Part shown: in pieces, positions 2,528-23,750 of the stretch
Position numbering within the stretch: position 1 is the stretch's first letter
Layout of the letters: the number at the start of each line of letters is the position of its first letter
Assembly (NCBI RefSeq): GCF_902652985.1
Contig: NC_047033.1
Coordinates: 26,288,001-26,352,000 of the forward strand
Length of the DNA stretch: 64,000 bases
Reading direction: 5' to 3'
Origin: Pecten maximus
Lineage: Eukaryota
Notes under the pieces: model-generated
What the model saw: only the letters and a program-made list of their open reading frames with translations
What the model was told of the DNA's origin: nothing
The model's database searches: none
Position numbers and translations under genes: made by a program

Positions 2528-2693
2528 AGTTGTACTTTTTTATTTTAATTTTTAATATTGCGTAACTCTCTGTTTCAGATAAGAAATCCAATGGGATCCG
2601 GTAACAGTTGAGTATACAGTTAGAGTGAGCAGAAGGACGCGTCCATCGTAAACAACCAATCAGCATAAGTACCTCATTCCTTGTCTCCAAATC

Positions 2694-3249
2694 ATGGCGA
2701 GTGTCAAGGCCGTTCTACGTCACATATACGTCATCATGTCCATGTTTATCACTTTAAGACTGTGTCAGGACGACTATTATGAATGTGAACCCTTACGAGC
2801 ATCTGTGTGCGAGTCTATGCCCTATAATTATACCATATTACCTAATACATTCAACGACAATAGCCAAGACGATGCTATAATCGCCATTAACCAGTACAGT
2901 CCCCTGATGAAAATAGATTGTAGTGTGAGTCTAGTGCCATTTCTCTGCGTCCTGTATCTTCCCGTCTGCACACAAATGCAGACTCCTCTACCTCCTTGTC
3001 GAAAACTGTGCAATGATGTTCGAAACGGATGCGAATCCATCATGAATGAATTCGGCTACATGTGGCCAGAGGAATTTAATTGTGCAAAATTTCCTTCAAG
3101 TGGATTATGTGTTGGTGAAAATCTGACGTCATCAGAAGGGAGCACCTCTATCTGGGCGTTGTCACATCCTCAGTTTACGACCCCCAAACAGATGGCGTCA
3201 CGGCCGATGGACATAACTTTGAAGCCAGGCAACAACGGAGAAAATACGG
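2694..3249 (+). CDS. Gene 1 coding exon 1: signal peptide and Frizzled CRD
   Basis: Hydrophobic N-terminus, then CEPL..C...YNYT.LPN..CS..L..FLC..Y.PVC..PPCR.LC..VR.GCE..M..FGY.WP...C..FP...LC (10 Cys). Upstream acceptor tttcag ends at 2578; donor G|gtaaac at 3250. Confidence 0.92.
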
Positions 3250-6200
3250 GTAAACATTTATTTATTTGCTTTAGCATTATAAATACTAGGTGGCGGATAA
3301 TGTGTAGTTACTGTTACTGGGTGACGGATACTGTGTAGTTACTGATGCTGGGTGACAGTTACTGTGTAGTTACTGATGCTGGGTGACAGTTACTGTGTAG
3401 TTACTAGTTACTGACGCTGGGTGACGGATACTGTGTAGTTACTGATGCTTGGTGACGGATACTGTGTAGTTACTGATGCTGGGTGACGGATACTGTGTAG
3501 TTACTGATGCTTGGTGACGGATACTGTGTAGTTACTGATGCTGGGTGACGGGTACTGTGTAATAACTGTTGCTGGGTGACGGATACTGTGTAGTTACTGA
3601 TACTGGGTGACGGATACTGTGTAGTTACTGATACTGGGTGACGGATACTGTGTAGTTACTAGTTACTGATACTGGGTGACGGATACTGTGTAGTTACTGA
3701 TGCTGGGTGACGGATACTGTGTAGTTACTAGTTACTGATGCTGGGTGACGGGTACTGTGTAGTTACTGATACTGGGTGACGGATACTGTGTAGTTAGTGT
3801 TGCTGGGTGACGGATACTGTTAAGTTCCTGATGCTGGGTGACGGATACTGTGTAGTTACTAGTTACTGATGCTGGGTGACGGATACTGTGTAGTTACTGA
3901 TGCTTGGTGACGGATACTGTGTAGTTACTAGTTACTGATGCTGGGTGACGGATACTGTGTAGTTACTGATGCTGGGTGACGGATACTGTGTAGTTACCTG
4001 GTACTGATACTGGGTGGCGGATACTGTGTAGTTACTGATACTGGGTGACGGATACTGTGTAGTTACTGATACTGGGTGACGGATACTGTGTAGTTACTGA
4101 TGCTGGGTGACGGATACTGTGTAGTTACTAGTTACTGATGCTGGGTGACGGATACTGTGTAGTTACTGATGCTGGGTGACGGGTACTGTGTAGTTACTGA
4201 TGCTGGGTGACGGATACTGTGTAATAACTGATGCTGGGTGACGGATACTGTGTAGTTACTGATGCTAGGTGACGGATACTGTGTAGTTACTGATGCTGGG
4301 TGATGGATACTGTGTAGTTACTGATGCTGGGTGACGGATACTGTGTAGTTACTGATGCTGGGTGACGGATACTGTGTAGTTACTGATGCTGGGTGACGGA
4401 TACTGTTTAGTTACTGATGCTGGGTGACGGATACTGTGTAGTTACTGTTGCTGGGTGACGGATACTGTGTAGTTACTGATGCTGGGTGACGGGTACTGTG
4501 TAGTTACTGATGCTGGGTGACGGATACTGTTTATTTACTGTTGCTGGGTGACGGGTACTGTGTAGTTACTGATGCTGGGTGACGGATACTGTTTATTTAC
4601 TGATACTTGGTGACGGATACTGTGTAGTTACCTGTTACTGATACTGGGTTGCGGATACTGTGTAGTTACTGATACTGGGTGACGGGTACTGTGTAGTTAC
4701 TGATGCTGGGTGACGGATACTTTGTAATAACTGTTGCTGGGTTACGGATACTGTGTAGTTACTGATGCTAGGTGACGGATACTGTGTAGTTACTGATGCT
4801 TGGTGACGGAAACTGTGTAGTTACGGATGCTGGGTGACGGATACTGTTTATTTACTGATACTTGGTGACGGATACTGTGAGGTTACTGATGCTGGGTGAC
4901 GGATACTTTGTAGCTACGGATGTTTGATGAAGGATAATGTTTAGTTACTGGTACTTGGTGACGGATACTGTGAGGTTGTAGTAAGTAAATCTCGGTTAGT
5001 GACTGATTGTTAATGCCTAATGTTAAGTGATTAATTAGCTGTTCTATATATTACTAATTGATCTTTTGTAATAACTTCTTCTTAGTGACAAGTATTTCAG
5101 TAAATTTTAACATAGTGACTATATCATTATCCATCCGATAGCTATATTTTACCACTGAAAGCTTAAAACAACAACCAAAGCTATCATTAGAGAAAGTTCT
5201 GACCTAGCCGGATCAAACATGTACACAAAAATAATTTTCTATTGTCTGAGACTGAGGCATCGCCATCAAAATGACAACCTAATGTAAGATCGCTGAAGTG
5301 TGGCTAAGATGAGCAAGGCTATTTTAACGAAGAACAGTCTTTGATCCCCACCCCAGCTCTCTCCGTAGAACTGAAGAACAACTTCCAGTAAGCACTTTGG
5401 TGATTGATGTCTCGTAGGATGGTTGCGTTATGTTCTGCGGAGTAAGTTATCTTCCCAACAAGGACACTGACAATTTGTATAGTCAGTATCCACGAGGTGA
5501 GGAGGATTGTGATTCCAACTAAAAGGTGAAGAAAAGAGTGTTCATTCTGATTTACTTACATGTATTGCTGAGGAGTAAAACGACAGCGAATACCAGCATG
5601 TGTAACTAATTACCATAATACATAAATTTCAAGGAGCCCTTGAAAAAGTCATACAAAACTTCCTCATAAAAACGTGCAAGTGGACTTGTTCAGAATCTAA
5701 CGGTCAAAGGTCAAGGTCACTGATCTCAGTGTATCTGTTATAAACGTAACTGTTCTCAAAGACTAAGGTTACTTTTCTCACGGGCCAAGGTAACTGTTCT
5801 CAAGGTAAGTATTCTTATACACCAAGGTAACTGTTCTCAAGGTAAGTATTCTTAAACACCAAGGTAACTGTAATCAAGGGCAAAAGCATCTGTTCTCAAG
5901 GTCATTGTTCTCAGGAACAAAGGTTCTCAAGGTCATTGTTTCAAGGACCAAGGCAACTGTTCTCAAAGACCAAGTTATATTAACCGTTCCAAAAGACCAA
6001 GGTAACTTTTCTCAAGGTCATTGTTCTCAAGGACCAAGGTAGCTGTTATTCTGGACTAAGGTAACTATTCTCAAAGACCAAGGTAACTATTCCCAAGACT
6101 AAGGTAACTGTTCTCAGGGTAACTGTTCTCAATGTCATTGTTCTCAAGGACCAAGGTAACTGTTCACAAAGACCTAGTTAACTGTTCTCAAAGTTAATTT

Positions 6201-9200
6201 CTCAAGACCATTATTCACAAGGACCAAGGTAGCTGTTATTCTGGACTAAGGTAACTATTCTCAAAGACCTAGGTAACTGTTCTCAAGGTAACTGTTTTAT
6301 AAGACCAAGGTAACTATTCCCAAGACTAAGGTAACTGTTCTCAGGGTAACTGTTCTCAATGCCGTTGTTCTCAATGACCAAGGTAACTGTTCACAAAGAC
6401 CTAGTTAACTGTTCTCAAGGTAACTGTTCACAAAGATCAAGGTAACTGTTCTCACAGACCAAGGTAACTGTTCTCACAGACCAAGGTAACTGTTCTCAAG
6501 GTAACTGTTCTCAAAGATCAAGGTAACTGTTCTCAAGGTAACTGTTCTCAAGGTAACTGTTATCAAGGTAACTGTTCTCAAGGTAACTGTTCACAAATAT
6601 CAAGGTAACTGTTCACAAATATCAAGGTTACTGTTCTCACATACCAAGGTAACTGTTCTCACAGACCAAGGTAACTGTTCTCACAGACCAAGGTAACTGT
6701 TCTCAAGGTAACTGTTCACAAAGATCAAGGTAACTGTTCACAAAGATCAAGGTAACTGTTCTCACAGACCAAGGTAACTCTTCTCACAGACCAAGGTAAC
6801 TGTTCTCAAAGACCTAGTTAACTGTTCTCAAAGACCTAGTTAACTGTTCTCAGGGTAACTGTTCTCAATGTCATTGTTCACAATGACCAAGGTAACTGTT
6901 CACAAAGACCTAGTTAACTGTTCTCAAGGTAACTGTTCTCAAAGATCAAGGTAACTGTTCACAAAGATCAAGGTAACTGTTCTCACAGACCAAGGTAACT
7001 GTTCTCACAGACCAAGGTAGCTTAACCAGTTGTTTTCTCAAAGATAGAAGATTGCCCAAGATGCCTTTCTATTTAGAGTTACTGAATGTTACTTAAACTG
7101 CATGTATGATGGGACTACTAATTTGTAGGCTCCCGGCATACAAATATTTATTTTACTGTTCTGACCAGGTTCAGCTTAATTGTGTTTAGCTGCACGTGGT
7201 TTTCGGTCGATTCACCTATAGAAGTATGTATTTATAGTTCTGCTCGTAGATGTTTTATAAACAATGCCAAACCGAACGCAGCAAGATAAGTTTATTTAGC
7301 GATTTTTCACCTTTGTCATGTGAACCAAGATCATATAGATTACTTTAGGATTTTTAGGATATCGTTTGCGTTGGAGATCCAAAATTATCATAACCGTAGA
7401 TATTTGGATATATTTAAATGCCTTATAACTTGAGTAAATAATAATTATATTGTGAATATATGACGATACATTTTAACACATGAACGGAAATATCGTATAT
7501 TGTATTTTATAAAAAAAAAACGTTCGTTTTTTTGAACAAAAAATCGTTGTTTACAAACTTCATTGTGTACACACTTTCGTTGTTTTCAAACTTCCGTTGT
7601 TTACAAACGTTCGTTGTTGACAAACTTTCGTTGATCATACAAATATAAATACAACTAATATTGTTTTATTGTGTTATTGTTATGTCATTGTTATTTGGGC
7701 TAACTACGAACGTAGGAGCCCAGGGAATAATTTGAAAGTTTAAAATCACAATAGGAAGTCCACACGAACGTAATACACAGTATTGCTGTAGACAGGCATT
7801 AATGAATTGCGATAACTTCTGTCTAATCCAAGGTTTAAATCGAATCATGAAAGAAATTCGGTTCAATTTGATTAAATAGCCATGTTGATATTTTACATAG
7901 TTTTACATATTGAATCGCCATTGACCACACAGGAAGACAGGGTGTCAAGTCTCAATGTAGTATATAGCAACCCGATAAATTCATTACAAAGACATTTGTA
8001 ACAGAATGCCTCCGCTAGGGATCGAACCCGGGACCTCTGGCTTACTTTCCTTACGTTCAACCGATTGTCGCGAAGAGAGGTTCTCTATCGGAGCGCTGCG
8101 ACGCTGAAAATAATACCTTCGGGTTGCCACGACCCCAAGGATTTTTCTGTATTACACAATTTATAACTCTCGATATGTATCGAAAGGTGCTAATATTTTG
8201 TGCGTTTTTTCTTCTTTCAGACACTGAAATCCCTGTGTTTATCATCCTGTCATCTTTACATAAACTGTTGCTGTATGACGTGTCGACCGGTGACCTGATC
8301 ACACTCTACTCCGGCCTAGACCAGGGCGCGGCTATCGACTACCATTTCGGCCTACAGTGGATTTACTGGGCCAGCCACGGGGACAGCAGGATATACCGGG
8401 GCTCTCTCGCTCTCGACGGTACGTTAGCTTTCTAATGTACCAGCAGAATTCAGTCGCCGAAATATTTTTTTATCTTCCTTAATAATTCAGACGTTTGTTA
8501 AAGTAGCAAGTAGCTGTTGACGCCACACAAATGCGCCAACATTAATCACTGTTATGTCACAAGTCTGAATGAAAAAATGGCCAATTGTCGAGGCAATTAC
8601 GCCTCGTAATGCCGACAAACGTTTAAAATAGGAAAAAATTGTTTGTGTAATCACCGTTACAATTTATAGGGAAACGATGAAAATTCCTCAATTGTCCAAA
8701 TTAGCCGCCGAAATGAACTTGACAACAGATTGACTTTGGATTCTCGCAGACCGAATAAAACACCGTTGTCATTAATAACATTTTTGATGGTGTATTTTGT
8801 TTGTATTGTATTTTGTTTGTAATAAACATTTCGTGTGATAATGTATTTTTGAAGAAGAACAAATACTTCATTGGTGAAAGTTTTTTTTCAATAATCCACT
8901 TACTAAAGCGCTGTTCTTCATTTATGAAGAAAATAAACATCACATCAACAATGATTGTATTTGTAGAAAGTTTTTGACATGTCACAAACGATTGTATTGG
9001 TAGATCAAAGAAATTCTGATACTGTAAACGTGGAGAAAGGGGGACATTTACGCTAATTACTTTCCTTTTTATCGCGAAAAATCCCCCCCCCCCCCCCCCC
9101 CCCCCCGCCGCGTATTATTTTGATATCAATTGCATAATCTCGATCAGCAAGCGAAAGTGGATAGATCGCGAAAATTACCCCAACGCGTATAGTTTAAATG

Positions 9201-12200
9201 TCGAAATCGCGAAATTAACCCCCCGCGAAAATAACCACGTTTACAGTATGTCACAAATGATTGTATTGGTAGATCACAGAAAGTCTGATATGTCACAAAT
9301 GATTCTATTGGTAGATCAAAGAAAGTCTGATATGTCACAAATGTTTCTATTGGTAGATGAAACAAAATATATTATGTAACAAATGATTGTAATGGTAGAT
9401 CAAAGGAATTCTGATATGCCGCCATTGACTATATTTCTAGTTCTGACAGACGTCCATTTGGTAGTTGACTCTGTGTCGTCCTCCATTGAAAGCATTGCTG
9501 TTGACTGGATCACACGTCATCTGTTCTGGATGGAGACATACCCTTCACAGATCAGAGTTGCCACCCTTGAGGGAGAAAATCCTACAATATTATTGGATAA
9601 AGAACTGGCCAATCCGAAGTCTCTGGTCCTTGATCCTATTGAAGGGTAAATCTGAATCCTTGGTAGTCCAGGGGTTACTCCCACTTTCTCTCTTTGCACC
9701 TTTGGAATATATCGTATCAAAATCGAAGGTTTAATCAACACCATCTTGTTGATAGAAAAAGACTAATTTGATAATTTCTTGCTCATTGCATACGAATTTT
9801 GAAGTCGCCATTACCGAAAACGCTGCACGAAATGTATCAGCTTAGCGATTGGTCAGTTTGTTTTTACTGTCACCAATCAAATAGCTAGTTGTGTGGCTCT
9901 GATTATGCAAGGAGCGAAAGTGAACGTAGAAAATGTTGCCTGTGTCACATTGAAGGCGAGCGAGATGTTGTGATAACATTTGTCTTAGTACTATAATTAT
10001 GTTACTGGAGGTTTGGGTGAGAAATTAACACAGATCCAATCGCTCGCTGGGAAAGCCAACAAACAGTTCATTGCTAATATTTTTAATTAACAAATTTCCT
10101 GTGAAAATGTCTGTGTCCTATGAAAATGATATACACTATGTATACAGGTGGATTTGATATTTTCGTGGGCATCATACCGACGTACCTGTTAAATTTCGCG
10201 GGCGAATATGTCGCGGTTGTTCACAGGGGCATGTCTAGTCTTATATTAAAAAATAGCCAGAAATACCTATATATAGGGACTTCTTATTTCTGGCTATTTT
10301 TTAATACAAGACTAGATATGCCCCTGTGGGATGTCCCAGTAAGATCTAGTTCGGGGGTGTTAATCTCGCGCAACCGCGCCTTGTAAACATGTACATAGCG
10401 CTAAAATAGATACTCATGTATGAGTATCTATTTTAGCGCTATAATTAATGACCGCGAATACAACAGAAATAAACCCCCGCGAACATAACAAAATACATTG
10501 TACATAAAATATTTTAACTGATAATTTGTCAGAATATATGCACAAGTTATTTCTCACTAAGGTGAAGATTTGAAAACTTTAAGAAAGAAAGTTTGCCAAT
10601 ATATCATCACTGATGTTTTACGTCACAAACATATGGGCCTGATTTTCACTGTTACAATAACATCCATACATTTTTATATTTACATTACGCGTTGTACTTC
10701 TTTGCTTCGGGTATGAATTTTGTAATTACACCTTGTACGTAATACGTAAATACGGGAATCTGGGATGTCTGCAATATTTAGCCTCCATCTTCGTCTAAGC
10801 CATTCTACAGCCGAGGATTAAAATTGATCGAACGTCTACGCAAGACAGCTTGGTGAAAGGACTCGGCACACACCGCCGATTGGATTAAGCAATGTTATGT
10901 CCAAAACTTTTATGTTTTTCATACACATGTTAGTAGGGTACCATGACACAGAGGTTGGATGAGAAAATAAGATCTATTTCGAGTTACATGGTTCGAAACA
11001 TAGCACATATCATTTACATTGACATTTATCAAACTTGTTCAAGATTGTAATCTAGCGACAGTGATCCAAGCTGATGATAGACAGTATGTTAATCTTAAAG
11101 AACATTGATACATGAACGATAACTAAAACACTGAAACAATGGAGGGAGAGACTGGATACTACGGTGGCTGATTTCAGCGCCGTCACATTTGCGCCCAAAC
11201 CATGCAAAGAGCAACAGTGCGCCATACGAGAAAAATGAACGCATAATAATACAACAAAATTCGTGATAGCGCGACATAAATAAAAATCTGTCGCCATTTC
11301 GGATTTGCAAGGTACTTTTGTCGCGTTGGCGGGGTATATTTTTCGCATGGCGCATTGTCGCTCTTCGCTTGGCGAACTGTCACCCTTCACGTGCACACTG
11401 CGACAATGTGCTGTGCGACAAAAGTGCCCCCCCCCCCCTCCAAAGCGACAAAAGTACCTTGCAAATGCGACAGGATTTGTTTAAGTCGCAATGTCGCGTA
11501 ATTTTGTCGTACGGCGCGTTCATTTTGTCGCATGGCGTATTGTCGCTCTTTGCATGGCGCACTGTCACATGGTCGTTATCACGTAGCGGGGCGCCAATGT
11601 GATAGTACGACAATGTAAGAGTGCGACAATTTGAGAGTGCGACAATGTGAGAGTGCGACAATGTGAGAGTGTGACAATGTGATAGTGCGACAGTGTGAGA
11701 GTGCGACAATATGAGAGTGCGACAATGTGAGAGTGCGACAATGTGAGAGTGTGACAATGTGAGAGTGCGACAATGTGATAGTGCGACAGTGTGAGAGTGC
11801 GACAATATGAGAGTGCGACAATGTGAGAGTGCGACAATGTGAGAGTGTGACAATGTGATAGTGCGACAATGTGAGAGTGTGAGAGTGTGACAATGTGAGA
11901 GTGTGACAATGTGAGAGTGCGACAATGTGAGAGTGCGACAATGTGAGAGTGTAACAATGTGAGAGTGCGACAATGTGATAGTGCGACAATATGATAGTGC
12001 GACAAGTTGACGTGTGATAGTGCAACAAGTTGACGTGTGATAGTGCAACAAGTTGACGTGTGATAGTGCAACAAGTTGACGTGTGATAGTGCAACAAGTT
12101 GACGTGTGATAGTGCAACAAGTTGACGTGTGATAGTGCAACAAGTTGACGTGTGATAGTGCAACAAGTTGACGTGTGATAGTGCAACAAGTTGACGTGTG

Positions 12201-15200
12201 ATAGTGCAACAAGTTGACGTGTGATAGTGCAACAAGTTGACGTGTGATAGTGCAACAAGTTGACGTGTGATAGTGCAACATAGCCGAAATCAGTCACTAT
12301 AGCTAACTGATTAGGGTGGCAATGTCTTCTGTTTTTGGGCACAGGGACTTGAGAATTTGTTATTGTCTACATGTATGTGGGCCTCCCTTAGTGTGTATAG
12401 CACATTTTCAGACGTTTTGGGGAGGCTAGATTAAAATTCGGTAAAAAAGACACCCCCGGTGTCATTCTGAAAATGTGCTATACAACATTTTCAGAATGAC
12501 ACCGGGGGTGTCATTTTACCGAATTTTAATCTAGCCTCCCCAAAACGTCTGAAAATGTGCTATACACACTAGGGGAGGCCCAAATACATGTAGACAATAA
12601 CAAATTCTCAAGTCCCTGTGGTTTTGGGGACGCCAGAGAACCCCATGTTGATCGCATGATGCGACTAAAGGTGTCTCCTGTAGAATCGGTGGATTTCTTA
12701 TGTCTCCTTTGCTCCAGGGGCCAAAAACTATCCGCCGCAGAATTAACAACACTTTCGTTCTTGATATTTGCCTGTGTGTCAGCTGTGTATTTGATAAATT
12801 GATATTATGTATCTTTTTTATGTTGTCTACAGTTTATAGATATTGTTTACCCTGTTTTGATATTATGTACAGTTTATAGATATTGTTTACCCCTCTGTTT
12901 TGATATTATGTACAGTTTATAGATATTGTTTACCCCACAGGTATCTGTTTTGATATTATGTACAGTTTATAGATATTGTTTACCCCACAGGTATCTGTTT
13001 TGATATTATATACAGTTTATAGATATTGTTTACCCCACAGGTATCTGTTTTGATATTATGTACAGTTTATAGATATTGTTTACCCCACAGGTATCTGTTT
13101 TGATATTATGTACAGTTTATAGATATTGTTTACCTCACAGGTATCTGTTTTGATATTATTTACAGTTGATAGATATTGTTTACCCCACAGGTATCTGTTT
13201 TGATATTATTTACAGTTTATAGGTATTGTTTACCCCACAGGTATCTGTTTTGATATTATGTACAGTTTATAGATATTGTTTACCCCACAGGTATCTGTTT
13301 TGATATTATGTACAGTTTATAGATATTGTTTACCCTACAGGTATCTGTTTTGATATTATGTACAGTTTATAGATATTGTTTACCCCACAGGTATCTGTTT
13401 TGATATTATGTACAGTTTATAGATATTGTTTACCCCTCTGTTTTGATATTATATACAGTTTATAGATATTGTTTACTCCACAGGTATCTGTTTTGATATT
13501 ATGTACAGTTTATAGATATTGTTTACCCCACAGGTATCTGTTTTGATATTATTTACAGTTTATAAATATTGTTTACCCCACAGGTATCTGTTTTGATATT
13601 ATGTACAGTTTATAGATATTGTTTACCCCACAGGTATCTGTTTTGATATTATATACAGTTTATAGATATTGTTTACCCCTCTGTTTTGATATTATGTACA
13701 GTTTATAGATATTGTTTACCCCTCTGTTTTGATATTATGTACAGTTTATAGATATTGTTTACCCCACAGGTATCTGTTTTGATATTATTTACAGTTTATA
13801 AATATTGTTTACCCCACAGGTATCTGTTTTGATATTATTTACAGTTTATAGATATTGTTTACCCCACAGGTATCTGTTTTGATATTATGTACAGTTTATA
13901 GATATTGTTTACCCCACAGGTATCTGTTTTGATATTATGTACAGTTTATAGATATTGTTTACCCCACAGATATCTGTTTTGATATTATATACAGTTTATA
14001 GATATTATGTACAGTTTATAGATATTATATACAGTTTATAGATATTGTTTTCCCCACAGGTATCTGTTTTGGATAGACTGGGTCGGTACTTTATACTCAC
14101 CTTCCGCCAGTATTGAGCGGTATGACATCAGTAGAAGCCGGCATGACGTCATTTTCAACATCACCAAGGAGATCTTACCAAATATGGGACGATCTATTGG
14201 CCTAGCTACGGACCTCCCGAACAAGCGTCTCTACTGGGTAGATGCAAAGTAGGTCAAATTTGGATTTCTATTTTTATCCTCCAATTAGATAAATAAATAA
14301 TTTCTGCTTGAAATAGAATACGATGCCATGAACTCTTCGATCTTTGATGCAGCTAATCTTAATATGTTTGTTGAAATAGGTGTAATCTGTTAATTTCAAA
14401 TTTCGAATCAAACCAAAACTTCCAAAGATACCTTATACACATGTTCGTATCTTCACCTGTAACAGGTGTGTTAATTAGGGTTTTGCATTGTTTAACGTCC
14501 TATCAACAGCTAAGGTCATTTAAGGACGGCCTCCCCTGTGTGTGTATGGTTTGGTTGTGTATTGTTTAACGTCCTATCAACAGCTAAGGTCGTTTAAGGA
14601 CGGCCTCCCCTGCGTGCAAGATGCCCGCGTGTGGTGAGTGTTTGTCTTGGGAGGCCGCGGAATGTTCGAATTTGTCTCGTGATAGCGCGGAACTGATGCT
14701 GACTTTATAGTGCTACCTCACTGGAGTATACTGCCGATTTCATGAAGCAGGGCACACCACTTGGCCACATTAAACTGACAGCGGGCAAACCAGTCGTCAC
14801 AGTCCTTAAATGCTGAGCTTTAAGCAGCACTGGGTTGAGTGTCGATGTGAACACGTACGTCACAATTAGAACTATACAATATTTGGAAAATGGTGGGAAA
14901 CTACATGTAGTTATCTCGGCGCAAGTATATAAATCTATACATGTTGTCTGATCACACCAGCGCTGTATCGAAAAGAAATGTGTTCAGTATCTATATAAAA
15001 AAAACAAAAACAAAAACAAAAACTGGCCCCGTATAAATCAATATATTGCCATCTTAAACCAGTAACTATTTCTATCAACTGTTGTACTCCAAACCGAACA
15101 AAGCTATTTACAAAAAGGTCCAGTATGGTTTAAAATACTACATTAGGGTAGCTCTGTGGTGTTCAATTGACCTAGATTTGTTTGGCATATGTCGTTGATT

Positions 15201-18200
15201 TCAAGCAAAGGCGCTTACTCTTCCGTACCCCTGGTCTTATTCTCCTTGTACGTGTTCTCATTGGAAATCTTTATTTTTGTTGGTATTTTAGCCTCGATTT
15301 ATTGGTTTCCGGTTTAATTCGTATTTCCTGTAGTGTTCAGTGACTTTTAGCGGGATTTCAATATGATTACACAACGGTACACGTACATTGCGTCTTGGAT
15401 TACGTTTTCTCAGCTTCAGTTGGACACGAAAGCTACTGGCAGTGCAGATCCGTTAATACTGCAGAAGACAGCTGGTGCAGAAAACGGCCCGTGATTCATC
15501 AAACACATTTTCTCGTCATAAAAACATGAAATATTATGTGGAAACTAGGCGGTTTCCCGCCGTTTTCCTATTTCTCAGGAACAGGGTAATTTCTAATGAA
15601 AGCTAATGACTGTTTCGTATTTTTTTCCGAAACAATAATCTATATGAAGGTCACACATAGAAATAAAAAAACATTTTGAAATCAGTGTAATAAACTGATA
15701 ATGTATACTCTCATTTACTTGACCTTAAAATCAAGGTCCTAGGGATGAAAGGTCATAGGGTAGAAAGGTCATGTGATTGAATTGTGTATCGGGTGTAATA
15801 TTTGAGTAGTTCTATCGTTCATTGATGAAACTGGTAAAAACGAGTGCTGCCTGCAACTAATTGGTCTTCACCTAGAGGTCAGGTCACAAAGACAGGGTCG
15901 GAGGTCATTTTCTTATTCATTGTATATTGAATATGTGGCGATATTAATTCTAGTTTATTAAAGGTCAAAGGTAACGTCACTACAATGCGGGTTGATGTTG
16001 TATGACGTTTCAGGGCTACGTGTATAGATACATTGGCTTTGGCAATTGGGGTCTGTACCATAGCATTAAGGTGTTTAACGATGAGACTGTTGTGAAGCTT
16101 ATAAAAGAAAGAAAATTCTGTTGGGTCGAAGATTAGTATAAATGCGATTTAATGTAACGTAACCTTGATGTATCCAGTGCTTACCGCCAAGGTCAATATC
16201 AAAGTAAACATCAAACTTCAATTAGAATTCATTCGAGTTGTCAAACGCTTAAGATTCTGTTCCACGTATCCACAGTGAAATAGTACCATAAAGCGGAAAT
16301 GACGTCAACGAGCTGTATCCCGACACGTTATACCTTAACTTGACATTTTTACCAGCAGGGTAAATACCTGTGTACAGCACTATTCCTGACGAGAGTTACC
16401 CTGCTGTGTCCCGATGGACTGGCATTAACAGCCTTCCCCGGTAATATAGTATCTCTCACAGCTAATGTTCCGTTCCTCTCTCGTGTTTCCATCAATCGTG
16501 CATCAGACTCTAACGTTAAAAGTTTGGGGTATTGGCAAACTTCTCAGACACATAAAAAGGCTGTGTAACAAATCAAATACACACCTTGTAAATTACTTAA
16601 TGACGTAATCCCGGGGCGAGTCTGGGACGTTTTCTGACGTAATCCAGTGTGAGTCTGGGGCGTTTTCTGACATAATCCAGTGTGAGTCTTGGACGTTTTC
16701 TGACATAATCCGAGGCGAGTCTGGGGCGTTTTCTGACATAATCCGAGGCGAGTCTGGGGCGTTTTCTGACATAATCCAGTGTGAGTCTGGGGCGTTTTCT
16801 GACATAATCCAGTGTGAGTCTGGGGCGTTTTCTGACATAATCCGAGGCGAGTCTAGGGCGTTTTCTGACATAATCCGAGGCGAGTCTGGGGCGTTTTCTG
16901 ACATAATCCAGTGTGAGTCTGGGGCGTTTTCTGACATAATCCAGTGTGAGTCTGGGACGTTTTCTGACATAATCCAGGGCGAGTCTGGGGCGTTTTCTGA
17001 CGTAATCCAGTGTGAGTCTGGGACGTTTTCTGACATAATCCAGGGCGAGTCTGGGGCGTTTTCTGACATAATCCGAGGCGAGTCTGGGACGTTTTCTGAC
17101 ATAATCCAGGGCGAGTCTGGGACGTTTTCTGACATAATCCAGTGTGAATCTGGGACGTTTTCTGACATAATCCAGTGTGAATCTGGGACGTTTTCTGATT
17201 TAGTTTTTGGTTTAGTATTGTTTAACGTCCTATCAACAGCTATGGTCATTCATGCATGCGTTAGGTGTTGAGCGCGCGGGTGTTTTGGGAGGCTGCGATA
17301 TGTTTGTGTTTGTCTCCATATGATCGACTTTATAGTGCTACCTCACTTAAGTATACTGCCGCAGACATCCAACAGGACACCCCACCCGGTCATATTATCC
17401 TGACAACAGGTAAACCAGTCGTCCCGCTCTCAAAATTCAGAGCATTAGCAGGAGTAGCAACTACTTTTTTTGAAAACGCCTCCGCTATGTCTCGGTCAGG
17501 GGCAGAACCCAAAGTCGTAATCCAGAACTTGGAGTCTTGGGAGTTTCCTGACGTAATGCAGGGCGAGTCTGGCGTTTACTGGCGTAAGTCTAGGAGAATC
17601 TAGGGGCGTTTTCTGACGTAATCCAGGCGGAATCTAGAGGCGTTTCCTGGCGTAAGCCTGGGCGAGTCTAGAGGGATTTTCGAACGTAATCCAGGGTGAG
17701 GCTGCGGCGTTTTCGGACTTATTCCAAGGTGAGGCTGGGGCGTTTTCGGACGTAATCCAGGGTGAGGCTGGGTCGTTTTCGGACGTAAGCCAAGGTGAGG
17801 CTGGGGTGTTTTCGGACGTAATCCAGGCCGAATCCTGAAAGTACGGGCTAACGTTTGTGGCTTTTAGCTTTACGTTTTACATGTACGAGCTGCTGTACAT
17901 GTTGCACGCACCTGTACCATCAAACATCACGCTGTGTTTTGTATTTTTGCTCTGTCTGGTATGTACAAATTGAAAGTAGCACACATCTTCCTTGATGGGC
18001 AAAAACACCTCTTGGTTTTATTCAGTGATTCTGACAACAACCCTGGTGTCGGCCGTGTTGTTCCGTAACCCTGATACCGTCTGTAGTGTGTACCGGATAA
18101 AAAGGTGTCCTAACTAAATGTATGTTTCAGAAATCAGACATTTATGCGCTTAGGCAAATACCATATTCCTTGTGGGAAGCACACCACGTGCGATTTGAAG

Positions 18201-21200
18201 TTGTTGCACACATTTTAAGAATAGCTTAGTGTGTACATCATTCTAACAATGGATACCGTATATGCACATCCATGGAATTTAAACACGTGGTTTGAAGAAT
18301 CCGAAGAATGTGTACCACAGGTTTTGTGGATTTTGACCTTTCCAGTTTTGGACGGTTTAGAGTAAAAATGGCACCCCGTAACCCGTTCTACTTTCAACTT
18401 TATATTTTTCATTATCTTAACAAAAATATGATGTGCAGTGAAAGCATATGTTCAAGAATTTAAAACAGTTGATCTTGCAAAGATTACGTAATATTTTGAT
18501 ATTTCGAAGTTAATCAGCTCTGAAAACTAAAATACACCTTAGGTTCAAATAGATCCGACTGTAACTAATGCTCAGGTCCGTGTGTTTCATAGCGATATGT
18601 GTCGGGTTTTTTTACTGCTTCCTCTTGCGATATGTAGTTCGGTAGATAATGGTTTACTGTGAATGTTTTTACTTTGACGATTTAAGGAGAGGTGCCGTCT
18701 TGGCGGTCATTTAATGACCAATTTACCCGATATGTCACGTTACATGTACAACGACATTGTCACATCACCACTATGTTTGTCAAGTTGAGAGAATCATGTA
18801 ACGACTTTTAGCCAAACCCTTCCTCGCGGGCCACACACTCAACTCAAAATACCCACGATGGAGCAGTGTCTAGAGATGCATTAGGTTGTTAAGAGTTGAA
18901 GAGAGAAGACGAAGAATTACAGACCTCAAATTCTCTACGCATTCTGTAGTCGCTTCTACAAAACGACGTGACGGGTACACCGGAATCCCTGCTGAAACGA
19001 CACATATGAATTATTCGAATTTGACTTATATACCTTTACTTACCACTCAGGAACGTATGGTCGTGTCGATTTTGATAGATAAATTTAACAGAATTACAAA
19101 ACCCATTAAAAATGTTATTTGGGCGCCAGATACTTTAACAGAATTACAAAACCAATTAAAAATGTTATTTGGGCGACAGATACTTTAACAGAATTACAAA
19201 ACCAATTAAAAATGTTATTTGGGCGCCAGATACTTTAACAGAATTACAAAACCAATTAAAAATGTTATTCGGGCGACCGATACTTTAACAGAATTACAAA
19301 ACCAATTAAAATATTTTTCAGGCGACAGATACTTTAACAGAATTACAAAACCCATTAAAAATGTTTTTCAGGCGACAGATACTTTAACAGAATTACAAAA
19401 CCAATTAAAAATGTTTTTGGGCGACAGATACTTTAACAGAATTACAAAACCAATTAAAAATGTTATTTGGGCGACAGATACTTTAACAGAATTACAAAAC
19501 CAATTAAAAATGTTATTCGGGCGACAGATACTTTAACAGAATTACAAAACCAATTAAAAATGTTATTTGGGCGACAGATACTTTAACAGAATTACAAAAC
19601 CAATTAAAAATGTTATTTGGGCGACAGATAATTTTAATGGCTATATTGTTATTTAATTGATAATTCCGAAACTTCTGTTTTACTCTCTGTGTATATTGCT
19701 ATTGTTAATCCGTTATTGGTTGGTCATCCATTACGTACATACAAAATATCACTTTCAGAAAGAGGGGCCGCGATATATTAGTCGGTTAGAGCGCTGGTCA
19801 TGTAGCCTCGCCGGGGCGAAGGTCTGAGGGGCGTGGTTCGACGCTCCCTACCTGTGTCGGTTTGTGTTTGAAATCTGAGAAACGGGTCGGTCTGTGGTGT
19901 TGTGGTTGTGTCTTTAGGCAGTACACTTTACCCTAATTACACAGGATACCATACGACGGGCCTCCCGTATGTTGTTCACTGAGGTAGTCACCAACTACTA
20001 CAAGTAAACCCCGCCTCAAAATGACTCTGGCTGTTTACGGGGCGATAAATCAAGTAAATAAACAAACAGTGTGACCTTTATTTTTATTAACAGGTCGGAG
20101 TCCGTGCAGACGGTCAGTTATGATGGCGCCTCATTCCGGGTCATAGTGAAGAGTAGGTTCCGAAATGGACTACAGAACCACAATTTCCTCACCGAACCCA
20201 GAAGTGTAGCAATTTTTGGGAAGAATGCATTCTGGTCAGATCGAGCCACTCAGTCCGTCGTCAAGGTTCGGGACACATAATATATATTACTACTTTCTCG
20301 TCAGTCAAAGGAATGAGTCTAACAAAATATGATAACTTAGTACTTTGTCAAATAAAATTGCTAAAAGGTACCTAATGAATGGGATGAATGGGGATATAGA
20401 TCGTCTACAGACTACAGTATAATCTGTAAAGGGAGAAAAATCCACCAAAATCTACAGAATATAATAGAAACATAAAAGTCCAGTATGTCTAAAGGGAGAT
20501 AAATCCACCAAAAAGTACAATACCTTGGTATATTATAGGGAGATAATTCCACCAGAAAATACAATATAAAATATGTAAAGGGAGATAATCCACAAAAAAT
20601 ACTGTATCATATGTAAAGGGAGATAAATTGGCCAAAAAATACAATATAATATGGAAAGGGAGATCATTCCACCAAAAGTAACAGTATAATATGCAAAGGG
20701 ATATTAATCCACCTAAAAGTATCCTCTATTAATGTACAGTATAATAAGGGATATTAATTCACAACAAATTACAGTATAATTTGTAAAGGGAGATAAATCA
20801 AACAAAAATACTGTATCATATGTAAAGGGAGATAAATCAACCAAAAAATACAACAATTTGTAAAGGGAGATAATCCTTCCAAAAAGTACAGCATGAAATA
20901 TGTAAAAGGAGATAAATCTGCAAAATGTAGTGGCAAAATATTGTTATTTTATATGTTACTTAGTCAAGCAAAGAATTGACACTAGATAGTGATAGTGCCA
21001 CCTAGTGAGTAATAAAAGTTGTCCCCCTGACTACGCTTATAGGAGACACACAATTATTTTTATGACAATGAAGTGTTATAGGCATAAGACAGTTTTATGT
21101 ATGATTGCATCTATCTGAAGTACATTTGATATCCAAAACTGGCTGAAATTAAGAGGTTTCAATTTATCTTCTCCAATATACTTAAAATCAATTTATGCCA

Positions 21201-21980
21201 ATTGAGATTCTTAATAAACAGTTGTATGATTCAAAGTTAAAGTTATCTGTGAGTCTCCTGTACAATCCTTTGTTTTTGTTTTGATTTTATTCACAGGCAA
21301 GAAAAGATGGCAGTTCTAAGGTAAAGTTACTGAAGACACTGACAGCTTCGCCTCCACTAGACTTAAAAGTCTTCCACGCCCTCATACAGCCCTCAGGTAA
21401 GAGTAGGCCTCAGGTAAGAGCAGGCCTCACATTAGAATATATCATTAATCAATACAGGTAAATGTGAATCTTCTACACTCTAACTTTGAAGAACCATTGG
21501 ACAGACTGGTAGGTCCTCCTTACCAATTTTCAGTTTCCATGAACATTATGAATCTAAGGCTTAAGGCTACCAGACCCAATTTGTATCTAAAGAAATGTCC
21601 AACTACAATCTTTTACTAGTGTATCATTCCTAAGAGACAATTTAGGTTTAGTAAGTTCTGGGAAATTGTTCTCCAGAATTGATGAGAAATGTCTCGCCCA
21701 TACCTTTGTTACAGTGCCGTGGCGGTTAGCTATTTGATACTGAAACTTTGGCCAAGACTTCCTCAGTTTCAATTTGAAAATATACTTTTAATGTTACATT
21801 TTAAGGATGTGATTGTGACTGTATACTGTATACAAGAGATGCTGTTTTATTGTAGGGACACCAAGGTACCAGATCAAACTGATGGCTACCTCCTCCAGTG
21901 ACGTTCATCGGTCCAGATATACAGTAGTGATGACAGCAGCCATACTGACTCTAACTGTAATGATAGCCATGTTTAGTTGA
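2694..21980 (+). CDS. Spliced gene, ~514 aa: signal peptide + Frizzled cysteine-rich domain + LDLR class B (YWTD) beta-propeller + putative GPI-anchor signal
   Basis: Exons 2694-3249, 8221-8418, 9441-9645, 14060-14248, 20094-20265, 21297-21396, 21856-21980. All introns are GT-AG with matching phases (1,1,2,2,0,1). Total is 1545 nt, ending in TGA. Confidence 0.85.
3288..4977. repeat. 31 bp minisatellite (ctgggtgacggatactgtgtagttactgatg)n
   Basis: Tandem periodicity; starts ~40 nt after the donor. Confidence 0.95.
5745..7020. repeat. Mixed 15/22 bp minisatellite (caaggtaactgttct[cacagac])n
   Basis: Tandem periodicity. Confidence 0.9.
8221..8418 (+). CDS. Gene 1 exon 2: start of YWTD propeller (AIDYH..IYWAS)
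   Basis: ctttcag| acceptor and G|gtacgt donor; LDLR class B-like motif. Confidence 0.85.
9022..9246. mobile_element. MITE, Tc1/mariner-type, TA target duplication
   Basis: TIR ctgtaaacgtgg / ccacgtttacag with TA on both sides; interrupts a 42-bp repeat. Confidence 0.8.
9441..9645 (+). CDS. Gene 1 exon 3: YWTD repeat (IAVDWITRHLFWME..NPKSLVLDP)
   Basis: ttctag| acceptor (an in-frame alternative AG ends at 9449) and GG|gtaaat donor. Confidence 0.88.
11162..12299. mobile_element. Non-autonomous TIR element with internal inverted segment and 16-bp/23-bp tandem arrays
   Basis: Imperfect TIR cggtggctgatttcagc / gccgaaatcagtcacta, TA-flanked; (gagagtgcgacaatgt)n at 11600-12000 and (tgatagtgcaacaagttgacgtg)n at 12000-12280. 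Confidence 0.6.
12340..12620. mobile_element. Foldback MITE (near-perfect 281-bp palindrome)
   Basis: cacagggacttgagaatttg ... caaattctcaagtccctgtg; flanks gtttttggg / gttttgggg. Confidence 0.8.
12826..14071. repeat. 50 bp tandem array copying the exon-4 acceptor
   Basis: Unit tacagtttatagatattgtttaccccacag|gtatctgttttgatattatg. Confidence 0.95.
14060..14248 (+). CDS. Gene 1 exon 4: YWTD repeats (YLFWIDW..GLATDLPNKRLYWVDA)
   Basis: ccccacag| acceptor and AA|gtaggt donor; hand translation. Confidence 0.88.
14488..14830 (-). mobile_element. SINE-like interspersed repeat, family A
   Basis: Shares tttaacgtcctatcaacagcta and tttatagtgctacctcact with copies at 17200 and 35075. Confidence 0.65.
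16600..17198. repeat. 33 bp minisatellite; degenerate continuation at 17513-17835
   Basis: (gacataatccagtgtgagtctggggcgttttct)n. Confidence 0.92.
17200..17512 (-). mobile_element. SINE-like family A copy inserted in the 33-bp array
   Basis: Same motifs as the 14488 and 35075 copies; array units on both sides. Confidence 0.65.
19083..19638. repeat. 50 bp minisatellite, ~11 copies
   Basis: (ttaacagaattacaaaaccaattaaaaatgttatttgggcgacagatact)n. Confidence 0.95.
19764..20068 (+). mobile_element. tRNA-derived SINE, family B
   Basis: A-box-like tagtcggttagagcg, B-box-like ggttcgac, CORE-like tgtgtctttaggcagtacacttta and (aaac)n tail; partial second copy at 24375-24583. Confidence 0.7.
20094..20265 (+). 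CDS. Gene 1 exon 5: YWTD repeat (PRSVAIFGKNAFWSD)
   Basis: taacag| acceptor and AAG|gttcgg donor. Confidence 0.85.
20420..20920. repeat. Degenerate ~40 bp tandem repeat
   Basis: Recurring tgtaaagggagataaatccacc. Confidence 0.75.
21297..21396 (+). CDS. Gene 1 exon 6: end of propeller (PLDLKVFHALIQP)
   Basis: tcacag| acceptor and CAG|gtaaga donor; resembles the PxDI.VFH..RQP closing strand of LRP-family propellers. Confidence 0.82.
21856..21980 (+). CDS. Gene 1 last coding exon: hydrophobic C-terminal tail
   Basis: ttgtag| acceptor; GTPRYQIKLMATSSSDVHRSRYTVVMTAAILTLTVMIAMFS*. Confidence 0.7.
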
Positions 21981-22082
21981 TATCAATCTCTATAGAACAT
22001 TTAGTCTGAAATCTTAAATAATGGGCTATCTAATTCATCTAAAGAATATAACAGAAACCAGGCTCAGGTATGGTGAATCATG

Positions 22083-23750
22083 GACATTATTACTAGGTGC
22101 TAACACCCAGGATGTGTATAACTAGGTGCTAACACCCTGGACATGTATTACGTGGTACTAACACCCCGGACATGTATTACATGGTACTAACACCCAGGAT
22201 GTGTATTACTAGGTGCTAACACCCAGGACATGTATTACGTGGTACTAACACCCCAGACATGTATTATGTGGTGCTAACACCCCGGACATGTATTATGTGG
22301 TGCTAACACTCAGGACATGTATTATGTGGTGCTAACACCCTGGACATGTATTACGTGGTGCTAACACCCAGGATGTGTATTATGTGGTGCTAACACCCTG
22401 GACATGTATTACGTGGTACTAACACCCCGGACATGTATTACATGGTACTAACACCCAGGATGTGTATTACTAGGTGCTAACACCCAGGACATGTATTACG
22501 TGGTACTAACACCCCAGACATGTATTATGTGGTGCTAACACCCCGGACATGTATTATGTGGTGCTAACACTCAGGACATGTATTATGTGGTGCTAACACC
22601 CTGGACATGTATTACGTGGTGCTAACACCTTGGACAAGTATTATGTGGTGCTAACACCCTGGACAAGTATTATGTGGTGCTAACACCCTGGACATGTATT
22701 ACGTGGTGCTAACACCTTGGACAAGTATTATGTGGTACTAACACCCCGGACATGTATTATGTGGTGCTAACACCCTGGACATGTATTACGTGGTACTAAC
22801 ACCCTGGACATGTATTATGTGGTGCTAACACCCTGGACATGTATTACGTGGTACTAACACCCTGGACATGTATTACTAGGTGCTAAAACCCAGGACATGT
22901 ATTACTAGGTGCTAACACCCAGGATGTGTATTATGTGGTGCTAACACCCTGGACATGTATTACTAGGTGCTAACACCCAGGATGTGTATTATGTGGTGCT
23001 AACACCCTGGACATGTATTACGTGGTACTAACACCCAGGACATGTATTACTAGGTGCTAACACCCTGGACATGTATTACTAGGTGCTAACACCCAGGATG
23101 TGTATTACTAGGTGCTAACACCTTGGACATGTATTACGTGGTACTAACACCCCGGACATGTATTACGTGGTACTAACACGCTGGATGTGTATTACTAGGT
23201 GCTAACACCCAGGATGTGTATTACTAGGTGCTAACACCCAGGATGTGTATTACTAGGTGCTAACACCCAGGATGTGTATTACTAGGTGCTAACACCCAGG
23301 ATGTGTATTATGTGGTGCTAACACCCTGGACATGTATTACGTGGTACTAACACCCTGGACATGTATTATGTGGTGCTTACACCTAGGATGTGTATTACTA
23401 GGTGCTAACACCCTGGATGTGTATTACTAGGTGCTAACACATAGGATGTGTATTACTAGGTGCTAACACCTAGGATGTGTATTACTAGGTGCTAACACCC
23501 TGGACATGTATTATGTGGTGCTAACACCTAGGATGTGTATTACTAGGTGCTAACACCTAGGATGTGTATTATGAGGTGCTAACACCCAGGATGTGTATTA
23601 CTAGGTGCTAACACCTAGGATGTGTATTACTAGGTGCTAACACCTAGGATGTGTATTATGAGGTGCTAATATACTCAGGACGTGTATTATACCATGCTAA
23701 CACCTTAGACATGTATTACATGGTGCTAACACCCTTGATGTCTATTACAT
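22083..23750. repeat. 29 bp minisatellite just downstream of the gene 1 stop
   Basis: (ggacatgtattacgtggtgctaacaccct)n. Confidence 0.95.

Follow-up and report, generated by a model that had tools for sequence, protein, structure and literature searches.

A Frizzled-class cysteine-rich domain and an LDL receptor-family propeller on one chain in a scallop protein with a GPI-attachment-like C-terminus

Results

Seven coding exons encode a single chain

We analysed a stretch of 64,000 nucleotides from the king scallop Pecten maximus (NCBI RefSeq assembly GCF_902652985.1, contig NC_047033.1, positions 26,288,001 to 26,352,000 of the forward strand; hereafter the window), which contains a plus-strand gene that joins a Frizzled-type cysteine-rich domain (CRD) to a YWTD propeller of the LDL receptor (LDLR) family. 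Its seven coding exons, when spliced and translated, reproduce exactly the 514-residue protein XP_033728071.1 (P0013), so that the open reading frame assembled by hand in an initial annotation of this sequence proved to be identical to a public entry. That entry is an automatic Gnomon model with the automatic name "prolow-density lipoprotein receptor-related protein 1-like", and it was recovered, at 100% identity over the CRD exon, when this exon was used in an exhaustive HMMER search. All seven coding exons have canonical AG acceptors and GT donors, and the reading frame is intact. The exon set of the initial annotation stood, with small corrections to the starts of exon 3 (9441) and of the last exon (21856).

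The architecture of the encoded protein can be stated with near certainty: a hydrophobic N-terminal signal is followed by a Frizzled-class CRD, a disordered stalk, one six-bladed YWTD propeller and a hydrophobic C-terminal end (Table 1). The earlier description of a signal, a ten-cysteine CRD, a linker of about 45 residues rich in serine, threonine and proline (S/T/P) and a YWTD propeller was supported by Pfam, a PDB sequence search, AlphaFold and composition. Also borne out was the claim that EGF, LDLa and seven-transmembrane (7TM) modules and a cytoplasmic tail are absent. Pfam found no match in the 514-residue protein besides Fz and Ldl_recept_b, the 7TM profile PF01534 and the NTR profile PF01759 both being unmatched; P0085, P0090 and P0043 score 2e-93 to 3e-136 against the former. 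Past residue 139 the chain lacks cysteine and so has neither an EGF nor an LDLa module, and it stops with a hydrophobic stretch, leaving no cytoplasmic tail. In addition, tblastn with LDLR-family and Frizzled proteins detected no further exon resembling an LDLa, EGF or 7TM module in the window, including the 42 kb downstream. A longer LRP-like isoform with downstream exons was also considered and, in agreement with the earlier expectation, was ruled out by this search of the window and by the lengths of the RNA contigs described below.

Table 1. Features of the gene and of its introns and flanks. Positions are those of the window unless a G000:C19 coordinate is given; aa, amino acids; pLDDT, predicted local distance difference test; GPI, glycosylphosphatidylinositol.
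Feature	Position	Strand	Basis or remark
Non-coding first exon, outside the window	ends G000:C19:26282936	+	spliced to the 2579 exon; GTGAGT donor
5' untranslated part of the ATG exon	2579..2693	+	acceptor AG 2577-2578; RNA-like contigs match from 2578
First coding exon (signal, CRD, stalk)	2694-3249	+	matches XP_033728071.1
Start codon and hydrophobic signal-peptide-like segment, aa 1-24	2694..2765	+	sequence; orthologue N-termini also hydrophobic
Frizzled-type CRD, aa 31-139, 10 Cys	2784..3110	+	Pfam PF01392; PDB sequence matches; pLDDT > 90
S/T/P-rich stalk, aa 140-185, to phase-1 donor 3249/GTAAAC	3111..3249	+	composition; pLDDT; contigs leave the genome at 3249
Propeller-start exon, aa 186-251, IYWAS blade	8221..8418	+	matches RNA contig ends after 3249; XP_033728071.1
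Exon 3, aa 252-319, LFWME blade	9441..9645	+	Pfam Ldl_recept_b E 1.4e-4 on the exon alone; XP_033728071.1
Exon 4, aa 320-382, LFWID and LYWVD motifs	14060..14248	+	Pfam; tblastn; XP_033728071.1
Exon for aa 383-440, AFWSD blade	20094..20265	+	tblastn; XP_033728071.1
Exon for aa 441-473, last blade, closing VFHALIQP	21297..21396	+	XP_033728071.1; end-to-end alignment with LRP2 and LDLR propellers
Last coding exon, aa 474-514 and TGA, GPI-attachment-like signal	21856..21980	+	composition; XP_033728071.1
Minisatellite arrays	283-2527, 3289-4972, 6013-7019, 11591-12280, 16601-17198, 19084-19634, 20490-20918, 22082-23734		introns and flanks

Transcripts join the CRD exon to the propeller

Seven public runs contain 7-12% of the sequence words of 2690-8440, which is roughly the size of exons 1 and 2 together. 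Read contigs were mapped onto 2560-4290 for four runs from three studies (X1, X2, X3 and X7), and in all four they cover the CRD exon to 3249 and leave intron 1 at zero depth, those of X1, X2 and X3 beginning at 2578. Past 3249, the X1 contig reads ACACTGAAATCCCTGTGTTTATCATCCTGT, an exact match to the start of exon 2 at 8221; the X2 and X3 contigs deviate from it in one or two positions, and X7 gives 23 letters only. The joint between 3249 and 8221, which the initial annotation had drawn, is thus confirmed in transcripts, and the CRD exon is spliced to the first YWTD exon. Two contigs, of 1783 and 1827 nt, retain 1066 and 1110 nt past this joint, close to the 989 nt of coding sequence that are left, and so fit an mRNA ending shortly past the stop codon at 21980. 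At their other end, the contigs carry 45-91 letters upstream of 2578, whose sole genome match is C19:26282906-26282935, followed by GTGAGT. This unique match, together with the GTGAGT and the AG at 2577-2578, indicates that the window is preceded, at a distance of about 5.07 kb, by a non-coding first exon.

Since the public entry is automatic and misleadingly named, and the genome models of Mizuhopecten and Tegillarca are truncated or short of an exon, we also asked whether the protein could be a chimeric prediction, made from a CRD exon and an adjoining LDLR-family gene, or a decaying pseudogene. We consider such an artefact very improbable. It is already contradicted by the spliced contigs of three studies, in which the first YWTD exon follows the CRD exon; the intact frame, the canonical splice sites, an intron-less Tegillarca contig of 1867 nt that holds the entire open reading frame, and a fold conserved at 47% identity across orders all argue against it.

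The CRD resembles those of FZD1, FZD2 and FZD7

Pfam places an Fz domain (PF01392) at residues 31-136 with an E-value of about 2e-29 to 2.7e-30 and a score of 105.6 bits, compared to a cut-off of 32.1, spanning profile positions 1-109 of 110. The ten cysteines of the CRD lie at residues 31, 39, 76, 85, 92, 102, 106, 113, 130 and 139, the Frizzled YNxT sequon is retained, and AlphaFold models the region with confidence. Among PDB sequences the nearest are FZD1, FZD7 and FZD2 (E about 4e-37), with FZD8, FZD4 and FZD5 next (about 1e-29 to 1e-27). With true FZD1/2/7 CRDs the scallop CRD shares 47-51% identity, and it is closer to these than to sFRP3.

In the structure 4F0A, the fatty-acid channel of Fz8 is lined by Q71, F72, P74, I78, M122, Y125, F127, W129 and P130 (PMC6873803). 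The scallop motifs QYSPLMKIDC and IMNEFGYMWP can be aligned without gaps to FZD1/7. What we take to be the equivalents of the Fz8 channel, placed by motif position rather than by a printed Fz8 alignment, are Q67, Y68, P70, I74, M117, F120, Y122, W124 and P125, all of them identical or conservative (aromatic or hydrophobic) exchanges relative to Fz8. Across scallops and the ark clam Tegillarca granosa seven of these nine positions are invariant, and the two that vary do so conservatively (M117 to V and Y122 to F). The assignment of the CRD to the FZD1/2/7 class, with the Wnt-lipid groove kept, is therefore well grounded in these alignments. A complex was also predicted between the CRD (residues 25-150) and the part of a scallop Wnt that its last exon encodes (L012:1501-1968); its score of 0.10 lies below the mark and counts neither way.

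A complete propeller and a lipid-anchor-like tail

Between the two modules, the linker at residues 141-185 is 36% S/T/P and disordered in the model, with pLDDT < 50 at 146-182. Beyond it, Pfam detects Ldl_recept_b on the 514-residue protein at E 3e-12, the sequence contains all five motifs of the YW type as well as the closing VFH..IQP, and residues 190-475 align end to end with entire LDLR-family YWTD propellers of solved structures. Single-propeller matches score 103.9 bits for ApoER2, 96.8 for VLDLR, 95.9 for the first propeller of LRP4, 91.2 for LDLR and 90.5 for the first propeller of LRP2; the LRP6 scores of 171 bits (E1E2) and 126 bits (E3E4) are each taken over two propellers. An AlphaFold (AF2) model was built on a 52-row alignment, an alignment of 5 orthologues having given an unusable pLDDT of 34.6, and reached a mean pLDDT of 84.7; in it the propeller spans 190-470, and residues 487-513 form a terminal helix. 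Within the propeller pLDDT is mostly > 90, dipping to about 71-82 in a few stretches.

In Foldseek, the modelled propeller superposes alike on ApoER2, LRP6 E1, LRP4 and LDLR (E 8e-24 to 1e-20, about 290 columns, 21-26% identity), with a root mean square deviation that is mostly 2.3-3.0 A and reaches 4.6 A for some LRP6 entries. The ESM Atlas contained no useful neighbours (best score 0.77). On the predicted structure, six YWTD-type blades make a closed and complete LDLR-family propeller, and by both its sequence and its modelled fold this propeller is of a generic LDLR-family type with no preference for LRP5/6. The claim that the chain carries both types of Wnt-binding module consequently stood in part: the CRD is of the FZD1/2/7 class with a conserved groove, but the propeller is as near to ApoER2, VLDLR, LDLR, LRP4 and LRP2 as to LRP6. 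The initial annotation had allowed that the propeller might come from another LRP or nidogen lineage.

The C-terminus consists of SSS (486-488), an 8-residue polar spacer, DVHRSRYT, and 18 hydrophobic residues to the stop codon (Kyte-Doolittle, KD, value 2.23), close to the hydrophobic end of about 19 residues described initially. In Ylistrum (KD 2.12) and, more weakly, in Tegillarca the tail has another sequence with a like character. To judge by its composition, the tail has the layout of a classical GPI-attachment signal, in which small omega residues precede a polar spacer of 5-10 residues and a terminal run of 15-20 hydrophobic ones.

The donor of the last-but-one exon is duplicated at 21397-21413, where CCTCAG/GTAAGAGTAGG precedes CCTCAG/GTAAGAGCAGG. 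Splicing from the second of these, at 21413, would add 17 nt and put the last exon out of frame, giving a product that ends in IQPSGKSRPQGHQGTRSN before the stop and lacks the hydrophobic tail; such an isoform could be secreted. A GT at 21402, if used as a donor, would add 6 nt in frame.

Distribution and origin of the gene

Proteins with both Fz and Ldl_recept_b were found in Ylistrum balloti (517 residues, 80% identity), in Argopecten irradians (a partial model) and in the ark clam T. granosa (a 440-residue genome model). A second Tegillarca version has 508 residues and corresponds to the 440-residue model plus its missing blade-1 segment. Because its whole open reading frame lies on the 1867-nt contig, that contig is necessarily intron-less and thus derives from a transcript, providing independent support for a single chain. 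A Mizuhopecten model named "Frizzled" also matches and ends at the exon boundary after blade 2, and a sixth sequence, P0037, covers exon 1 only and is 57-63% identical to the scallop sequences. Among the 150 best CRD representatives, only the P. maximus and Tegillarca proteins have a propeller. A word-indexed homologue search on the CRD region yielded 51 candidates, and a profile search missed even true Frizzleds. Among the matches listed, the family occurs in pteriomorph bivalves, and, given the insensitivity of these searches, its range may be wider. The CRD search was led by uncharacterized proteins with 3-13 tandem Fz CRDs (P0001, P0003, P0023 and others), which are unrelated to the locus and come from the shrimp Penaeus chinensis, Montipora corals and an electric fish; multi-CRD proteins of shrimp, corals and fish fill the list of the best 150.

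The gene is single-copy in the P. maximus genome, and the idea of a tandem paralogue was rejected by a genome-wide CRD search. The next-best genomic CRD belongs to an intron-less FZD1/2/7 orthologue of 586 residues at G000:C19:26968162-26969922 (L002:1348-3108; PDB FZD1, E 6e-225), which is located 0.68 Mb downstream of the gene, shares its chromosome and strand and has a CRD that is 51% identical without gaps. Since signal peptide, CRD and stalk of the present gene share one exon with a phase 1 end, a partial duplication of this Frizzled gene with later capture of propeller exons is a reasonable origin. In this view, the CRD exon is probably a partial copy of the nearby intron-less FZD1/2/7 gene. 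We also observed Wnt-family exon sets, of at least four or five genes, at G000:C19:24.78-25.17 Mb, 1.1-1.5 Mb upstream on the same chromosome; their linkage with this gene and the FZD1/2/7 gene may be coincidental.

Minisatellites crowd the introns and flanks of the gene in long arrays of up to 65 copies, the period being 16-50 bp. A tandem array at 12894-14071 has 24 copies of a 50-bp unit with 92% matches, and the unit ends in a polypyrimidine tract and an AG followed by the opening bases of exon 4 (TTTACCCCACAG/GTA). As the unit carries this acceptor-like end, about 24 similar acceptors stand in a row, of which the true one of exon 4, at 14059/14060, is the last. On the minus strand, at 38683-39342, lies an open exon of 219 residues from a neighbouring gene; it contains an EDEFFECDE FFAT-like motif and is similar to the catalytic subunit of the Rab3 GTPase-activating protein (PF13890, E 6e-10).

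Discussion

Wnt reception usually depends on a Frizzled, which binds Wnt through its CRD, and on a second, separate membrane protein, LRP5/6, with its YWTD propellers; the known extracellular Wnt modulators have either a CRD, as in sFRP and Ror, or a lipid anchor, as in glypicans. A literature search on the accessions and on the combination of an Fz CRD with a YWTD propeller found no paper. We know of no FZD, SMO, sFRP, ROR, MuSK, corin, carboxypeptidase Z (CPZ), MFRP or collagen XVIII protein that carries a YWTD propeller (class B) or is GPI-anchored. The protein described here is a new domain architecture among CRD proteins of the Wnt pathway, one whose sequences were public but mis-named.

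With the FZD1/2/7 receptors (class F GPCRs) the scallop protein shares a signal peptide, a ten-cysteine CRD, the YNxT sequon, the QxxPLxxxxC and MNxFGxxWP motifs and a flexible linker after the CRD, with CRD and linker in one exon. Unlike these receptors, however, it has no 7TM core (PF01534), cytoplasmic KTxxxW or PDZ-binding tail, and its linker runs instead into a YWTD propeller and a GPI-like signal. With LRP5/6 (Arrow) and the LDLR family it has in common one canonical six-bladed YWTD (Ldl_recept_b) propeller, with 23-26% identity and a deviation of 2.3-2.6 A from the propellers of ApoER2, LRP6 E1, LRP4 and LDLR, but here the propeller is single, free of cysteines and without an EGF module packed behind it, and LDLa repeats, a transmembrane helix with tail, PPPSP and NPxY are all lacking. 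By similarity, this propeller is no closer to LRP5/6 than to LDLR, VLDLR, ApoER2, LRP4 and LRP2.

Among proteins that carry a CRD outside a receptor, sFRP/Frzb likewise have a Frizzled-type CRD with no signalling part and are presumed extracellular Wnt binders, as the scallop protein would be; sFRPs have a C-terminal NTR domain and are soluble, whereas the scallop protein has a YWTD propeller and is probably lipid-anchored. ROR/CAM-1, MuSK, corin, MFRP, carboxypeptidase Z and collagen XVIII also combine an Fz CRD with unrelated extracellular modules. Of these, CAM-1/Ror can be a Wnt sink, MuSK partners the YWTD-propeller protein LRP4, and corin and MFRP have the CRD together with LDL-receptor class A repeats. 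Glypicans (Dally, Dlp) are GPI-anchored at the surface, as the scallop protein may be, and bind the Wnt lipid and shape Wnt distribution, but they have an unrelated fold and heparan-sulfate chains and neither a Frizzled-type CRD nor a propeller.

These features suggest the following mode of action. The C-terminal signal would be exchanged for a GPI anchor, placing the protein on the outer membrane leaflet, where its CRD would bind the palmitoleate and the 'index finger' of Wnt as Frizzled CRDs do, and the propeller may offer a second binding surface for some partner. Having no 7TM core, Dishevelled-binding part or cytoplasmic motifs of the LRP6 type, the protein cannot signal alone, and a membrane-tethered Wnt-binding modulator is the likeliest role. 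The engineered GPI-dFz2 of Drosophila tethers Wg and arrests Wg signalling (PMC9926275). It shares with the scallop protein a Frizzled CRD lacking a signalling part, and differs in being artificial and in having no propeller, whereas the scallop protein, in which the GPI anchor is predicted, is natural and conserved. As this precedent is inhibitory (PMC9926275), we judge a sink to be the likeliest mode, in which Wnt would be held at the surface and signalling damped, like GPI-dFz2. Taken as a whole and including the proposed mechanism, the statement that the protein is a GPI-tethered modulator of this kind, likeliest a sink, seems to us about evenly balanced between right and wrong.

The same anatomy would serve a positive co-receptor or presenter, with the tethered CRD passing Wnt to Frizzled and LRP5/6, or the propeller bridging to them, and thereby raising local signalling. 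Glypicans and RECK do raise local Wnt signalling for some Wnts, a long disordered stalk between two binding modules suits bridging or presenting, and this class of CRD is normally part of active receptor complexes. Sequence cannot tell a presenter from a sink; nevertheless, the only experimental precedent we found for a GPI-linked Frizzled ectodomain is inhibitory, and we consider a presenter unlikely.

A function unrelated to Wnt, in which the CRD would bind another lipid or protein and the propeller a ligand of the matrix or lipoprotein type, for instance in bivalve-specific adhesion, matrix or uptake, appears improbable to a similar degree. It would suit a generic LDLR-family propeller to which ApoER2, VLDLR and LDLR are at least as close as LRP6, and a family confined, among the matches listed, to pteriomorph bivalves; Fz-fold CRDs elsewhere, moreover, take non-Wnt ligands, as Smoothened does with sterols and as in MuSK. 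The identity of 47-51% to true FZD1/2/7 CRDs speaks against it, however, and groove residues kept from scallops to ark clam are hard to explain without a Wnt-like lipidated ligand.

Several points weigh against a GPI-tethered Wnt sink. With its CRD on a GPI anchor, the protein could just as well gather Wnt and present it in a positive role, and Fz-fold CRDs also bind ligands other than Wnt. The GPI anchor itself is inferred by rule of thumb, and the Tegillarca tail is weaker in hydrophobicity, at KD 1.59 compared to 2.23 in Pecten. In addition, neither PDB sequence scores nor Foldseek show an LRP5/6-specific similarity of the propeller, so a second Wnt contact is speculative, and orthologues were not found in oysters, mussels or other phyla among the best 150 CRD matches and in word-limited searches.

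We also entertain, as a doubtful extension, that the chain acts as a single-chain 'receptor pair', in which CRD and propeller grip both receptor-binding faces of one Wnt, or a Wnt plus a Dkk- or sclerostin-like ligand. If so, it would trap or present Wnt with high avidity while tethered in lipid rafts, and pteriomorph bivalves would have created a new class of extracellular Wnt regulator by joining a portion of a duplicated Frizzled gene to an LDLR-family propeller.

Taken together, our results correct the misleading automatic names "LRP1-like" and "Frizzled" and describe a non-signalling, probably GPI-linked chain that unites a Frizzled-class CRD with an LDLR-family propeller and has been kept since the split of scallops and ark clams. 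A YWTD propeller is apparently viable here without its usual EGF partner. If the protein does bind Wnt, it would be a natural counterpart of the engineered GPI-linked Frizzled ectodomain, and a simple system in which to study how tethering and a second module affect the range and strength of Wnt.

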